From Oculina patagonica (Eukaryota): a DNA stretch of 64,000 nucleotides. Shown one piece after another: positions 33,278-61,239 of this stretch. Every line of letters begins with the position of its first letter. Positions within the stretch are counted from its first letter, which is position 1. The notes under the pieces are model-generated. The model made no database searches and had not been told where the DNA came from. It saw nothing but the letters and a program-made list of their open reading frames with translations. Both the position numbers and the translations under genes were made by a program. The stretch is taken from contig NC_135762.1 of NCBI RefSeq assembly GCF_052425735.1, positions 8,308,001 through 8,372,000 on the forward strand, in the 5' to 3' direction.

Positions 33278-34282
33278 ATGGCAGCTTTTTCTTTCGCGAT
33301 TCTCTTTAAATCTGCGGCCCTGATTGCTTGCTTGTTAGTTGCTGTAAGCGATGGGTGTACTTACAAGAGTGACTGCGAATGGCACGAAGTCTGCTGCAAG
33401 TCCATATGCATTTACGGAACAAGTTGTGTCGGTGACTACTGCTTTTCTGATTCTGGTTGTTCTATCGGGCAGAGTTGTTGTAACAGTAGATGTGTTTACG
33501 GTTCAAGCTGTGTCGGTCATCGCTGCCGCGGGTACAGTTGGTCTGATGATTGTTCTATCGGGGAAATTTGTTGTAATAGTAAATGCGTTGAAGGATCAAG
33601 TTGTGTCAATCGGTCCTGTTCGTCTGATTCTGGTTGTTCTAGCGGGGAAAGTTGTTGTAATAGTGAATGTGTTCACGGCTCAAGTTGTGTCGGTCAGTCT
33701 TGTTCATCTGATTCCGATTGTTCAAAAATCGAGGAACGTTGCTGTAACAGCGAATGCAAAGATGGCTACAATTGCGTGGGGTCTTCTTGTTCCTTGAACT
33801 CTGATTGCGGAAGTGACGAGACCTGTTGTAAAGGAAAATGCCAATACTCGTACGATGATTGTAATAACTCTGAAGCTGTCGTCATTGCTTGTTCAGTAAT
33901 TGGCTCACTCGCTTTCCTATTCGCGATCTCCGTGTTTTCTTTCTACGTTCGCCGACGGCACATAGCACTCAGTTACGGCAGAATGATAGAAGTTGAGTCA
34001 GCAGTAATAACAGCTACTGTCACCACCACGGTTGCAAACATACAGAGCAACCCACCCTTCCCGGGGCAGGAAATTCCACCGTCGTACCCATGCCACCCCC
34101 CGCTCGAGCTCCAGTTTGAACATCAGCAACACACGACCAATCCTCCACCATACCACCCTGGAACAACGGCAGCAAGAGAACAGCCTCCCCCTTACACTGA
34201 AGCACCAAAGGGAGGATCGGGGAGATTTGATGCTCCCAGCCCGTCTTTTTCATCAGCGCCACCTGTTTTGCAACAGCACTGA
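33278..34282 (+). CDS. Cys-repeat TM PPxY receptor-like protein, copy 2 (6 modules, YGRM)
   Basis: Intact intronless ORF from ATG 33278: signal peptide, 6 CX5CX5CCX3CX5C modules, TM, RRR, 3 PPxY. Confidence 0.92.
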   Translation: MAAFSFAILFKSAALIACLLVAVSDGCTYKSDCEWHEVCCKSICIYGTSCVGDYCFSDSGCSIGQSCCNSRCVYGSSCVGHRCRGYSWSDDCSIGEICCNSKCVEGSSCVNRSCSSDSGCSSGESCCNSECVHGSSCVGQSCSSDSDCSKIEERCCNSECKDGYNCVGSSCSLNSDCGSDETCCKGKCQYSYDDCNNSEAVVIACSVIGSLAFLFAISVFSFYVRRRHIALSYGRMIEVESAVITATVTTTVANIQSNPPFPGQEIPPSYPCHPPLELQFEHQQHTTNPPPYHPGTTAAREQPPPYTEAPKGGSGRFDAPSPSFSSAPPVLQQH

Positions 34283-35500
34283 GAAAGCTGAGGAATATTC
34301 TGTCATGATTTCATTGCTGGTAACTTAACAGACAAGCTAAGAACTTTTACAGACATCATTTCCTCTGATGTGCTGCAAAACTCGCTTTGAAGTTTTAATA
34401 ACAGGCTTTTGCATAATAATAATAATAATAATAAAATAAAAAAAAAAAAAAAAAATAATAATAATAATAATATTAATAGTTTTACAGGGAAGAACTGAAG
34501 GCGTGTAGTAAAACCCGTCCGGACGCCGAAACGAAACGACGCGATTTCACCGAAACGAAACCAATTAAACAAGCGAAAGTGAGCGTTATTCAGGCTGTTA
34601 CTGGAGTGCTGCTTTTCAGGCTTACCGGCGTGTACCGTTTGTTTCGGATTTTAGTACTTAGTACGTGCCATAAACAGAGAGAAATCGTACTCGTTTAGAC
34701 ATTTAATTAACCGGTATGCTTTTAGAATTAACTACGATCGATAGCGGCAACAGGCTAGAATAAGAGCATGTCATTCCTTGACAGTTTGATAACTAAATTA
34801 GTTCTTGTTCCTGTTTGTTGAAAGAAAATTAACGTTTTCGACAGGAAACAAGTACTCCATGTGTTCTACGCTTTAAAAAGCTTTCCCAAAAAGATGGTTT
34901 TTGATTTGATTCGTTTATTACTTCGTTTATTACTTTTTGATTACTCAATGATACATGGCGTTTTTACAGTTTTCAAGACAACAAAAGTATCATGCTACAA
35001 AAATGAGATAAACAGAAGTGTCATGTTACATGCGTTTAAAAAACCAAAGGCTCTTCGAGCAACCTCATTGTAATTCGATGAAGTGCCGACCTTCACATTT
35101 TTCTAAGTAAGTATCCAATAAAGTAATGCAATCTAACCTCATTTGTGTTTGAATGTTTTATTTTTCCAAATGAGTTGCGTCATTAACTGTAATTTGTGAT
35201 GATCTTAAATTAGCATAAATTACTATTTTGCCAGCACGGACCAGAGGGTTGGGTACGGGTTTGAGGTGTGCTGTGTATAGTGGGATTTGAGTTTGAAATC
35301 GGTGACAGTTGGCGAGGTGAGACATTCTACGGCCAGCCATTGCCGTGTTTAGGTTAAGTTTAGTTTTGTCATCAGTTGTAATCCACTGTTGTACGTTAAT
35401 TTTGTTCTGTTATTGTTATTATTTCGCTGTATAATGCCTTAGGTTTATTTTTCTACGGTACTTATTTTGAATTAAGATACCCTAAAACCCCAAGGATTGC

Positions 35501-57801: not shown

Positions 57802-59768
57802 CTCTGACAAGTACTGTAAAAATCGCTTTGAAGTTTTCATAACAGGTTTTGAACAGTGGCTTTTGCATATATAAATATTCATAGTTCGTTTCTTGGCCCA
57901 CTTGAGCGTGGCATATTTTGTTCGCAAACTACGTTTGGAGACCCCAAGAAAACAAATAGTGCACGACTTAGTAGAAATGTTTGACCAGCCAAATGCCGAG
58001 TTTCATGACTTTCTCTTGAAAGGAAGGCGGGCAGTAAAACCGGCCGCCGAAACGAAGCGAAACGAATCCACCAGAACGGAACTACTGAAAACAAGCGAAA
58101 GTGAGCATTATACAGGCTAAATGGAGTGCTATTCAGGCTAACCGGTGTGCATCGTTCCATTTCGTTATGAAGGCTAAGTTAAGTGCTATTTTCAGGCTAA
58201 CTAGAGTCCACCGTTTCATTTCGTTTCGGCCGGTTTTAGTTCTTATTATAGGAATATAATGACGAAGCATTTTAACAACGCGAACAAAATTTAAGCTTAA
58301 TAAAATTAACACGAATTTAGGAAAAGGTCCTGTTAGATGCTTATAATTAACATGTTTGTAAAAATAACTAAAATTAACGTGAATTTTTGAAATGGTTAAT
58401 AACGCGCATCGTTAATTTCCTAGACAAGTCTCAGTAGTGTCAGAAATCTCGCTATTAAAGTAGTCGTTTTTAAAACCCTCAGTTGACTTAGCTACGTAGC
58501 ATAATAGGAGACAACAAGACATATGTACAAAGTTTAATGTATAAGGTTAAACAAAATTTGTGCTCGCGGATTATTTGTAACATGATTTGACTAACAGCAA
58601 CACTTACAGTTTACGGCAGAGAGATTCGATTCGATATCTAGACCCATGACTCTGGAGCAAGTTATCAAATAAAAAAAGATCGGCCGTCAGTCTTAAACAG
58701 TTCAAGACCCAGATAAGTAGGCTTGATTTAAGTTACATGTTAGATGGATGCAGTGGCTGCTTGATCTTTGCAAGATTACAGGATTTTTCTATATATCATT
58801 TGCAATTTTCTTTCAGATTTATGTTTTTTTTTTGCTTCTATTTCGATTTTATATTCATTTAAGATAGCGTTAGTTTGGTGTCCCCTATTAGCATGCGCAG
58901 TGTGCATTCCACACTGCTAGATGTGACGTCAGATGTAATTGACACAGTAATAAAGTCATTATAATAACTTAACCTGGTAGTGGAAAACTGCACATAATTT
59001 AGTTATTGCTCAATGTTTTTAAAAGGAAATGGTTAAAAAATAAAAGAAAGTATCACAAAAGAAATAACAGGGTCAAAGGATTCCATATATTTTTAATACA
59101 TTCAGTGATTTAACAGGGGCGTAGCCAAGATTTTTTCAGAGGTACGCACAATTTTCTCAGTGATTCGTACTCGATTCCCGCTCCCTTCCTTCCCCTCAAG
59201 TCTTGATTCTTCCTCTTTTTTCACTTGCTTAGTTTTACGCAATAGTGTAAAAAAAAATCAACGCAATAACGTTACAGCTCAATGGATATCGTGACAGTTC
59301 GCGTCTAATAATAAATTAACATGTTAGCTTATCATAGGATAGCGTAACCCACCCTTCGAGCAACTGGACCTTGTCGAAACCGCTTCCTATTAAAGACATA
59401 TAATTGGTAAATAAACTCCTTTAGACGGCTGGTATATTGGAGGATAATGCCCAAGGCTGAAAGATTGTCGAAAAATGAACAGTTGACCGACAATTTTTCA
59501 GCCAAGGTTATTATCCTCCAGTGTATCAGTAAGCCTCCGATTAATTTCTACAACGCGCTTTATCGCCAGTAAATTTAAAGGAAGAAACCTACAGTAATTA
59601 TTGAAACAAATGTAAGTTGATTGGTTTACATCGATGGAAGCATTCATTTGTTATTCATGATTCTTTTAGCCATCTCCGTTATTAAAACACAAAGATTCAT
59701 GATTCCTACCAATTTTACAGCTGTGATTCATGATTCAGCTTCCACCCCCGATCGAGAAAGAGTTAAAT

Positions 59769-61239
59769 ATGGCAGCATTTCCTTTTGCAATGCTCTTCAA
59801 ATACACGGCACTAGTTGCCCTGCTTGCTTTCTCGTTAGTTGCTGTTAGCGATGGGTGTGCTTCCAAGAGTGACTGCGGAGCGAATCAAGTCTGCTGCAAC
59901 TACAGATGTGTTTATGGTTCAAGTTGTGTCAATCGGTCCTGTTCGTCTGATTCTAGTTGTTCAAGCGGGGAGAGTTGTTGTAATAAGAAATGTGTTTACG
60001 GCTCAAGTTGTGTCGGTCAGTCTTGTTCGTCTGATTCCGATTTTACATCTAGCGCGGAGAGTTGTTGTAGACGTTAATGCCTTTCCATTCCAAGTTGTGT
60101 CGGCCGTTACTGTTCGACTGATTCCGATTACACCCCTCTGTAACAGACCCAGTGGAATCTTTATCTTCACCGGGTTTTCGGAAAAAAGTCACTGGGTTGG
60201 CCAATTTCACACCGGGTCGGCTTATTTGTGCTGGTTTTTTTTAATTGGTTTATTCGACAAAACACACACTCGCACAGTCACTGGGGAAGCATGGAAATAG
60301 ACAGGTAAAATCAAAATATTCGCTGGGTACCTAAGAGACTAAATTTCCACTGGGTAGGGGAAAATAATCCACTGGGTCGGGTTCCACTGGGTCTGTTACA
60401 GAGGGGTGTACGATTGTTCAAGCGGAGAGAGTTGTTGTAGACGTTCATGCGTTTCCATTTCAAACTGTGTCGGCCTGTACTGTTCGACTGATGACGATTG
60501 TTCAAGTGGGGAGAGTTGTTGTAATAGTGAATGTGTCTACGCATCAAGCTGTGTCGGTCAGTCTTGTTCGTCTTATTCTGATTGTTCTAACGGGGAGATC
60601 GAGAGTTGCTGTAGCCGTTTATGCCTTTCCAGGTCAACTTGTGTCGGTCAGTACTGTTCGTCTGATTCCGATTGTTCTAGCGGGGAGAGTTGCTGTAACG
60701 GCGAATGCAAATATAGCTCCGATTGTTTTGGGTATTCGTGTTCCTCCAACTCTGATTGCGGAAGTTGGGAAAGCTGTTGTAACGGAAAATGCCAATACTC
60801 GAGCGATGATTGTATTGATTCTACCGCCGCCGTCATTGCTGGTGCAGTTATTGGCTCCCTCGTTTTCATCTGCGCGATCTCCATGTGTATTTTCTTCGTT
60901 CACCGACGGCAGAGAACAATTCGTTACGGCAGAGTAATAGAAGGACAGAGAGTAACAGCAACTACTGTCACCACCGCTGGTGCAAATGTACAGAGCAACC
61001 CACCCCACCCTGGGCAGGTAATTCCACCGTCCTACAGCTACCCATACTACCCCCCGCTCCAGTTTGAACATCAGCAACACACGATTAATCCTCCACCATA
61101 CAACCCTGGAACAATGGCAGCAAGTGAACAGCCTCCCCCTTACACTGAAGTACCACAGGGAGGATCAGGGGGAGTTGATGCTCCTAAAACGTCTTTTCCA
61201 TCAGCGGCACCTGTCTTGCAACAACACTGGGAAAGCTAA
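59769..61239 (+). pseudogene. Cys-repeat TM PPxY receptor-like gene, copy 9 (8 modules; premature TAA and MITE insertion)
   Basis: ATG 59769; TAA 60075-60077; MITE 60129-60410; the downstream half is open to 61239. Confidence 0.9.
60129..60410. mobile_element. MITE inserted in the coding region of copy 9
   Basis: Perfect TIR TACACCCCTCTGTAACAGACCCAGTGGAA; CGAT duplicated (60125-60128, 60411-60414); removing it restores CSTDSDC. Confidence 0.93.

Follow-up and report, generated by a model that had tools for sequence, protein, structure and literature searches.

The stretch of DNA analysed here (the window: 64,000 nucleotides of the coral Oculina patagonica, C5:8,308,001-8,372,000, to which all positions below refer unless a chromosome is named) carries a tandem array of genes for cysteine-rich membrane proteins. 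We are inclined, with moderate confidence, to read them as anthozoan type I membrane proteins with 3-11 knottin-like modules, a transmembrane (TM) helix and a PPxY tail, in which the loops diversify in all module classes and which would work by an adaptor-type mechanism. A sequence-only reading of this DNA had located the diversity in the membrane-distal first module, regarded as a possible ligand-binding tip under diversifying selection on a stalk of adjustable length. This observation is real, but it is modest and local, and the diversity was wrongly confined to the tip: the outermost module leads in variability by a modest margin only, because every module has fast-evolving loops at the same positions. 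Module 1 is thus one variable module among several, and it happens to be the most diverged one in this young local cluster.

A tblastn search of the window with one copy identified an array on the plus strand with eight full-length copies (A to H) and one fragment; six of these nine members are intact, two (A and H) are broken and one is a tail fragment, and the copies are intronless single open frames, with the disruption of A and H as the exception. Each protein starts with a hydrophobic signal peptide of ~26-29 residues that ends in VSDG, followed by modules of 28 residues with six cysteines (C-x5-C-x5-CC-x3-C-x5-C plus a four-residue linker), present in 5-8 units in the window copies. Behind the modules come one TM helix, the sequence RRRQR and a proline-rich tail of ~100 residues with three PPxY motifs, which in every window copy are PPSY, PP(P/A/L)Y and PPPY; most relatives carry 2-4 such motifs. 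The features of a type I topology (signal peptide, one TM helix and cytoplasmic C-terminus) are present in all copies. Nucleotide identity indicates that the modules are positionally orthologous between copies, in the order module 1, generic internal modules, a penultimate module of the CCNSECKDGY type and a last module. The convergence of the internal modules noticed earlier is borne out by the consensus of 35 canonical modules, CSSDSDCSSGESCCNSECVYGSSCVGQS. The family-wide consensus of module 1 is CTSKSDCGVNQVCCNYRCVYGSSCVGQS, with a signature, (N/D)-(Q/E)-V-C-C, that is conserved across the family, and module 1 is therefore not simply hypervariable.

The family extends well beyond the window. 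A whole-genome search returned at least 74 matches, mostly in a second, larger cluster at C5:5.02-5.19 Mb, and in O. patagonica the family comprises dozens of tandem copies in two clusters on one chromosome (~5.0-5.2 and 8.33-8.37 Mb). The paralogs read in the second cluster, where many copies contain stops, show the same layout as those of the window, with a module number from 3 to 11, in agreement with the earlier proposal of an ectodomain of adjustable length. As judged from the sequences, the family plan is a distinct module 1, 0-9 generic internal modules, and distinct penultimate and last modules. For the comparisons beyond the window, 15 usable paralogs were taken from loci L008-L029, out of ~60 family copies. 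Two of these loci (L022 and L029) have zero internal modules. Three others, L016, L021 and L009 (second cluster at C5:5.10-5.15 Mb and contig C1539), have 7-11 modules in which adjoining internal modules are near-identical, a pattern that suggests recent intragenic module duplication.

Regarding the distribution of the variation, all the module-1 loop strings quoted in the sequence-only reading were located in copies A to H, with C and D sharing EVNQV/DFI; the range assigned to them begins with the first module of B and ends with that of H, but LLNEV/NYR belongs to pseudogene A, outside that range. The loop indels RGYSWSDD, TRFESD and KIEER were found in module 3 of B, module 3 of E and module 5 of B, respectively. 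Among the window copies, the difference in non-Cys columns is 0.41-0.53 for module 1 versus 0.24-0.35 for the other Cys modules (Mann-Whitney, one-sided p 0.004-0.025). Because module 1 had been picked after looking, a column permutation was used that let any module be the maximum, and the excess of module 1 then has p 0.017-0.086. Over all columns, module 1 (0.32-0.40) again ranks first among the Cys modules in pairwise amino-acid difference. The values for the last module (0.33-0.40) and for the TM segment (0.23-0.43) are nearly as high; module 1 is not significantly above the last module in these copies (p 0.06-0.34) and only marginally above the TM segment (p 0.013-0.10). The signal peptide (0.18-0.22) and the tail (0.15-0.18), described earlier as highly similar, are indeed the least divergent parts. 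Among 22 paralogs, mean pairwise dN is 0.275 for module 1, 0.245 for internal, 0.250 for penultimate and 0.266 for last modules, and mean non-Cys entropy is 1.38 bits for module 1, 1.19-1.29 for internal modules and 1.29 for the penultimate one. Thus, the concentration of diversity in module 1 holds only weakly, as a maximum within the window, but the contrast in divergence vanishes family-wide.

Codon-based estimates of ω (dN/dS) were obtained with a GY94-type maximum-likelihood model with a shared tree, a partition-specific synonymous rate and a partition-specific ω. For seven window copies, ω is 1.23 in module 1, 0.51 in module 2, 1.41 in module 3, 0.93 in the penultimate and 0.91 in the last module, with 1.23 in the TM segment, 0.83 in the tail and 0.55 in the signal peptide. 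The sequence-only reading implied a higher dN/dS in module 1 than in the other modules, and this was essentially not borne out: in these copies, giving module 1 its own ω (1.22 versus 0.82 for the other ectodomain modules) did not improve the fit (likelihood-ratio test, LRT, p=0.28), and the value for module 1 is indistinguishable from 1 (p=0.51). For the 22 paralogs on a shared tree, ω is 0.76 in module 1, 0.76 in the penultimate and 0.70 in the last module, 1.03 in the TM segment, 0.67 in the tail and 0.55 in the signal peptide. When a separate tree was fitted to each segment in order to remove between-segment recombination, the estimates for the same paralogs were 0.90 for module 1 (confidence interval, CI, 0.68-1.23), 0.60 for internal modules (CI 0.49-0.74), 1.01 for the penultimate and 0.78 for the last module, 1.10 for the TM segment and 0.81 for the tail. 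With these trees, module 1 does not differ from the penultimate plus last modules (0.90 versus 0.90, p=1; 22 paralogs), the comparison of module 1 with internal modules gives p=0.077, and that of the three fixed-position modules with internal modules gives p=0.022 (0.90 versus 0.60); the internal modules are somewhat more constrained.

Site models point to selection on individual loop positions. On the shared tree, M2a is preferred over M1a with 2ΔlnL=74 and places 6.7% of codons at ω=3.6; a posterior >0.95 is reached in module 1, penultimate and last modules alike by the two residues that directly follow Cys2, and in module 1 also by the third residue between CC and Cys5 and by one linker residue, with zero such sites in the signal peptide and the TM segment. 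The hot positions are 8, 9, 17 and 27 of the module. With separate trees, 2ΔlnL between M2a and M1a is 41 for module 1, 59 for internal, 51 for penultimate and 19 for last modules, and the signal peptide does not reject M1a. The selected-site class has ω 3.4-8.4 across the four module classes, and module position 9 (loop-2 position 2) is hot in all four. In a parametric bootstrap for module 1 (40 replicates under the M1a null, with the tree re-estimated in each), the 95th percentile of the statistic was 6.9 and the maximum 14, versus the observed 41. The module-1 residues named by the sequence-only reading are thus probably real targets of diversifying selection, with the same positions targeted in other modules: positive selection at sites is supported, and it is not tip-specific.

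A model in which ligand binding and diversifying selection are confined to module 1 as the tip, and the rest is a passive stalk whose length changes by module gain or loss, has to be weighed against these results. It would account for the top rank of module 1 in amino-acid divergence in the window, for its four sites with posterior >0.95, for the lower ω of internal modules and for the module number from 3 to 11, but the ω of module 1 cannot be told apart from the value for the other window modules and equals that of the penultimate and last modules over the 22 paralogs, internal, penultimate and last modules each prefer M2a over M1a with hot sites at the same loop positions, internal dN family-wide (0.245) is about that of module 1 (0.275), and module 1 retains its conserved NQVCC core. 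We consider this model unlikely.

Neutral drift in young, partly decaying duplicates offers another explanation, in which constraint would be relaxed, the cysteines and a few motifs would be kept, and the excess of module 1 would represent sampling noise in 22 non-Cys codons. The single gene-wide ω of 0.90 in the window and the values of 0.55-1.03 per segment family-wide fit such a process, as do the broken copies A and H, the many stop-containing copies in the second cluster and the marginal significance of the module-1 excess after post-hoc correction. Drift does not predict, however, that hot sites recur at homologous positions; each of the four module classes strongly favours a class of sites at ω 3.4-8.4 over the nearly neutral model, the module-1 statistic lies beyond all 40 null simulations, and the six intact copies retain full open frames, all 30-36 cysteines and three PPxY motifs, so that drift alone appears an improbable account of the array.

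The diversity of module 1 could also arise without selection if gene conversion and unequal crossing-over homogenised the internal modules and the tail while the end modules escaped. In favour of this stand the three ~4.06-kb tandem units, which are 97% identical, the identity of C and D, the extra module of copy B, which is nearest to modules of G and H (92-93% nucleotide identity), and the uneven dS between segments of the window copies (0.075-0.25). Nevertheless, module 1 has a dS of 0.16, which does not exceed the values for module 2 (0.23) and the last module (0.25) in these genes, and a relative synonymous rate of only 1.2; internal modules within one gene are separated by little less than those from different genes (dS 0.36 versus 0.44). 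The excess of module 1 lies in dN, not in dS, and we regard such an artefact as very unlikely.

The TM and juxtamembrane segment (e.g., 47440-47550 in copy E) evolves as fast as any module, with ω about 1.0-1.2, yet a small-xxx-small motif, AGAVIG, has been retained in it, as has one glycine that at least 90% of relatives share; AGAVIG may be a helix-packing motif.

Structure prediction points to knottin-like modules. In an AlphaFold2 model of copy E built with 38 homologues, the ectodomain has a pLDDT of about 90 and is followed by a helix (167-202) and a disordered tail, and each module forms a short turn and a beta-hairpin; a di-module model (pLDDT 85) likewise has one hairpin per module. 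Searched as a whole against the PDB with Foldseek, the model gave zero matches at E<=0.001. Single modules superimpose on EETI-II, MCoTI-II, MCTI-A and hanatoxin with an rmsd of 1-2 Å over 23-27 residues, at weak Foldseek E values (1.5-10), and in an exhaustive VIA-align search with the di-module model the only chains at Z>=2 (seven out of 48,161, Z 2.1-2.5) were all knottin toxins; the corresponding search with the whole model was dominated by the TM helix. The match scores to knottins are weak because the domain is tiny. The best PDB match of the di-module model is the N-terminal region of Dkk4 (TM-score 0.56 by query, E 0.7). In AFDB, the nearest neighbours (E 1e-18 to 1e-10) are uncharacterised or auto-named proteins ("keratin-associated protein 5-4-like"), which we take, judging by their accessions, to be cnidarian, and proteins with EB, DUF7107 and Dickkopf_N domains come next in line. 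The modules, which have six cysteines with the spacing of an inhibitor cystine knot (ICK) and a small predicted beta-hairpin core, model as ICK/knottin-like. An ICK proper is defined by disulfides I-IV, II-V and III-VI, the third of which threads the ring. Knottin peptides, such as squash trypsin inhibitors and the toxins of spiders, cone snails and sea anemones, share with them the C-C-CC-C-C order and comparable loop lengths, but are secreted singly, whereas the coral knots stand in membrane-anchored arrays, and nothing suggests a toxin role for the coral modules.

Comparison with known families places these proteins near single-pass adaptors with PY motifs ([LP]PxY). In window proteins, Shisa_N (PF13908), CYYR1 (PF10873), WBP-1 (PF11669) and VOPP1 gave no match at E<=1; among the 38 family members, the CYYR1 model matched one, at E=4.8e-4 and below the cut-off, and Shisa_N matched none at E<=1. 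When 1.84 billion representatives were searched with a profile of the TM segment and tail, only 181 proteins scored E<=1e-3, and the family is therefore narrow. At E values from 1e-6 to 1e-5, this profile extended to proteins of the CYYR1-like kind and to ones with Shisa_N (e.g., P0117, E=1.5e-6, and P0131, E=1.7e-5), values that composition may inflate, and when 75 of its weak hits were scored by Pfam, nine matched CYYR1 (best 2e-11), two Shisa_N and two WBP-1, with the proviso that proline and TM composition could inflate the scores. The nearest ESM Atlas clusters are shisa-5-like proteins of Cnidaria, CYYR1, WBP1-like proteins and VOPP1, with scores of 0.80-0.89 that serve as leads only. 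A word search with the tail alone returned only the window's own copies, and the literature, when searched, yielded no specific report of such a family (cystine-knot, PPxY or transmembrane) in corals.

The Shisa-like/STMC6 adaptors are reportedly defined (Pei and Grishin in 2012) by six conserved ectodomain cysteines arranged as C*C*CC*C*C, and the coral modules fit this pattern, repeated 3-11 times rather than once. With CYYR1 and the STMC6 proteins (WBP1, WBP1L/OPAL1, VOPP1 and TMEM92), the coral family shares a signal peptide, a Cys-rich ectodomain, one TM helix, several PPxY motifs in the tail and, in the juxtamembrane part, the sequence G-(R/Q)-V-(V/I) with a Thr-rich stretch after it; it differs in that 3-11 knottin-like modules take the place of a single short Cys/Tyr-rich unit, and in its large, tandem, fast-evolving and apparently anthozoan-restricted expansion. 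CYYR1 is laid out in the same way and carries three PPxY motifs, through which it binds the WW domains of WWP1/2 (PMC11399591), and the PY motifs of Shisa are likewise read as NEDD4-binding (PMC10531659). Shisa/CKAMP proteins are described as single-pass adaptors with an N-terminal Cys-rich domain of the cystine-knot type and a proline-rich PY tail able to engage NEDD4 ligases (PMC10531659; PMC6470934); unlike these, the coral proteins have no C-terminal PDZ ligand and carry a multi-module ectodomain. WAP, Dickkopf_N, DUF7107 and EB families differ from the coral one in lacking the TM helix and the PPxY tail, and in cysteines per unit (six in coral, eight in WAP and ten in Dickkopf_N). DUF7107 is sub-threshold in 21 of the 38 members, and WAP matches 32 of the 38 at E<=1 (best E 2.1e-6), also sub-threshold.

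Two candidates were discarded. WAP (PF00095) has eight cysteines in four disulfides rather than six cysteines, and window proteins score 12.8-18.6 bits with it versus a cut-off of 20.8; a galaxin-like skeletal matrix protein turned up in none of the searches made, which were not aimed at it, and the TM helix and PPxY tail stand against a secreted matrix role.

The layout, the PPxY parallels with CYYR1 and Shisa, the ESM Atlas leads and the hits of the TM and tail profile together lead us to read the coral proteins as a multi-knot, lineage-specific variant of the PY-motif adaptor kind. In this reading, the invariant cysteines form a scaffold, and two to four loop positions per module diversify under selection in every module class (mainly the residues right behind Cys2, the one that precedes Cys5, and a linker residue). 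In the mechanism proposed, the ectodomain loops would bind extracellular or cis-membrane partners, and the tail, which by analogy probably recruits ubiquitin ligases, would attract NEDD4-family HECT ligases via their WW domains. Binding by the ectodomain could thus be linked to sorting that depends on ubiquitin, in the manner of CYYR1, WBP1L and Shisa-type adaptors, and unequal crossing-over would alter both copy number and module number. Several points weigh against the overall reading. No Pfam model reaches its threshold, with WAP, DUF7107, Dumpy_DPY, Comm, RCR and CYYR1 sub-threshold only, and each fold match is weak by itself (Z 2.1-2.5; Foldseek E>0.3). The site tests were applied to recombining paralogs, which can yield false positives, and on short alignments; loop 2 of the last module is rich in indels, and some of the apparent changes there may be misalignment. 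A strong relaxation of constraint would fit the gene-wide ω near 0.9 and the two broken copies as well. Finally, among the public runs holding the locus in a single run search, none is recorded as RNA, and they look like DNA: the contigs of four runs also cover the intergenic 58.3-59.1 kb and differ from the window by 1-5%.

The members of the array are listed in Table 1 together with the other features of the window.

Table 1. Positions of the array members and neighbouring features in the window.
Feature	Position	Strand	Module 1 (loops)	Description
ORF of 356 aa	4366-5436	+		Rich in Ser, Thr, Pro and Glu; repeated TAESxKS units; C-terminal hydrophobic segment; no Pfam match
Retroelement	14982-18374	+		Three overlapping/adjacent ORFs; middle one (15391-17202) with RVT_1, E=2.7e-11
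Copy A	25388-26295	+	25466-25549 (LLNEV/NYR)	Pseudogene; 5 modules
GPCR gene	29197-30345	-		Rhodopsin family; intronless; 382 aa; Pfam 7tm_1, E=5.6e-38
Copy B	33278-34282	+	33356-33439 (EWHEV/KSI)	Intact; 334 aa; 6 modules
Tail fragment	35497-35670	+		Orphan cytoplasmic tail, last ~58 codons; at start of first ~4.06-kb unit
Tandem units (three)	35501-48887			~4.06 kb each; boundaries near 35501, 39575, 43636 and 47700
Copy C	38830-39744	+	38911-38994 (EVNQV/DFI)	Intact; 304 aa; 5 modules
Copy D	42891-43805	+	42972-43055 (EVNQV/DFI)	Coding sequence as C (0 differences in 915 nt)
Copy E	46948-47859	+	47026-47109 (GVNQV/EYR)	Intact; 303 aa; 5 modules
Copy F	49628-50527	+	49706-49789 (KVNQA/NHG)	Intact; 299 aa; 5 modules
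Copy G	56538-57545	+	56616-56693 (LSNQV/GSSG)	Intact; 335 aa; 6 modules
Copy H	59769-61239	+	59856-59939 (GANQV/NYR)	Disrupted
MITE	60129-60410	.		282 bp, inside copy H; perfect 29-nt terminal inverted repeats, TA at each end

The frame of copy A is lost twice because of insertions of 4 bp (25853-25856) and 1 bp (26208). Copy D is the product of a recent ~4.06-kb tandem duplication. The boundaries of the tandem units fall inside the tail-coding part, which leaves the orphan tail fragment and places the 3' end of copy E, whose tail belongs to the repeat from ~47700, in the repeat. Module 1 of copy G has lost three residues in loop 1 and gained one in loop 3. In copy H, the third module is degenerate, with a Cys-to-Phe change and an in-frame TAA at 60075-60077, and the module after it is split by the miniature inverted-repeat transposable element (MITE); the NCBI model P0005 splices out both lesions as one intron. 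No joint across the MITE or the stop of copy H was found in the four DNA-like runs, which have no bearing on transcription or on the NCBI intron. The MITE has high contig depth in the public runs and is therefore marked as a repeat, and repeat-level depth occurs also at the intergenic positions 57.6-57.9, 58.24-58.40 and 59.41-59.57 kb. The deposited models ACROYT_G018425 and ACROYT_G018426 (P0018 and P0007; 56538-57545 and 59769-61239) have the Cys-module region of G and H, respectively, in the wrong frame, as runs of V, S, R and L followed by the correct tail, and these module-region translations are likely annotation errors. Among the neighbours, the G-protein-coupled receptor (GPCR) gene lies between copies A and B on the opposite strand, the ORFs (open reading frames) flanking the middle one of the retroelement have no Pfam match and the retroelement region reaches a GC content of 0.46-0.48, and the 356-aa ORF resembles all or part of a mucin-like type I membrane protein.

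In a bolder interpretation, which we consider doubtful, the family would be a rapidly diversifying recognition repertoire of corals, in which hypervariable dipeptides in the knottin loops bind variable outside partners, for example microbes, symbionts or conspecific tissue, with ubiquitination through PPxY/NEDD4 and endocytosis; if this were true, it would be a cystine-knot, membrane-anchored counterpart of variable immune-type receptors, in which unequal crossing-over tunes the numbers of copies and of modules. Corals have few characterised surface-recognition systems, and the combination seen here, of a very stable knottin scaffold repeated 3-11 times, selected loop positions recurring in each module and a tail of the NEDD4-recruiting type, is rare. 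The family is read as an uncharacterised, fast-evolving poly-knottin relative of PY-motif adaptors, and it would extend the Shisa/CYYR1-type adaptors to a multi-module architecture. Should the loops bind variable partners, a candidate role of the family would be the recognition of microbes, of symbionts or of self versus non-self, linked to endocytosis. The outermost module is no privileged hypervariable tip, and in functional work every module should therefore be regarded as a possible binding surface.

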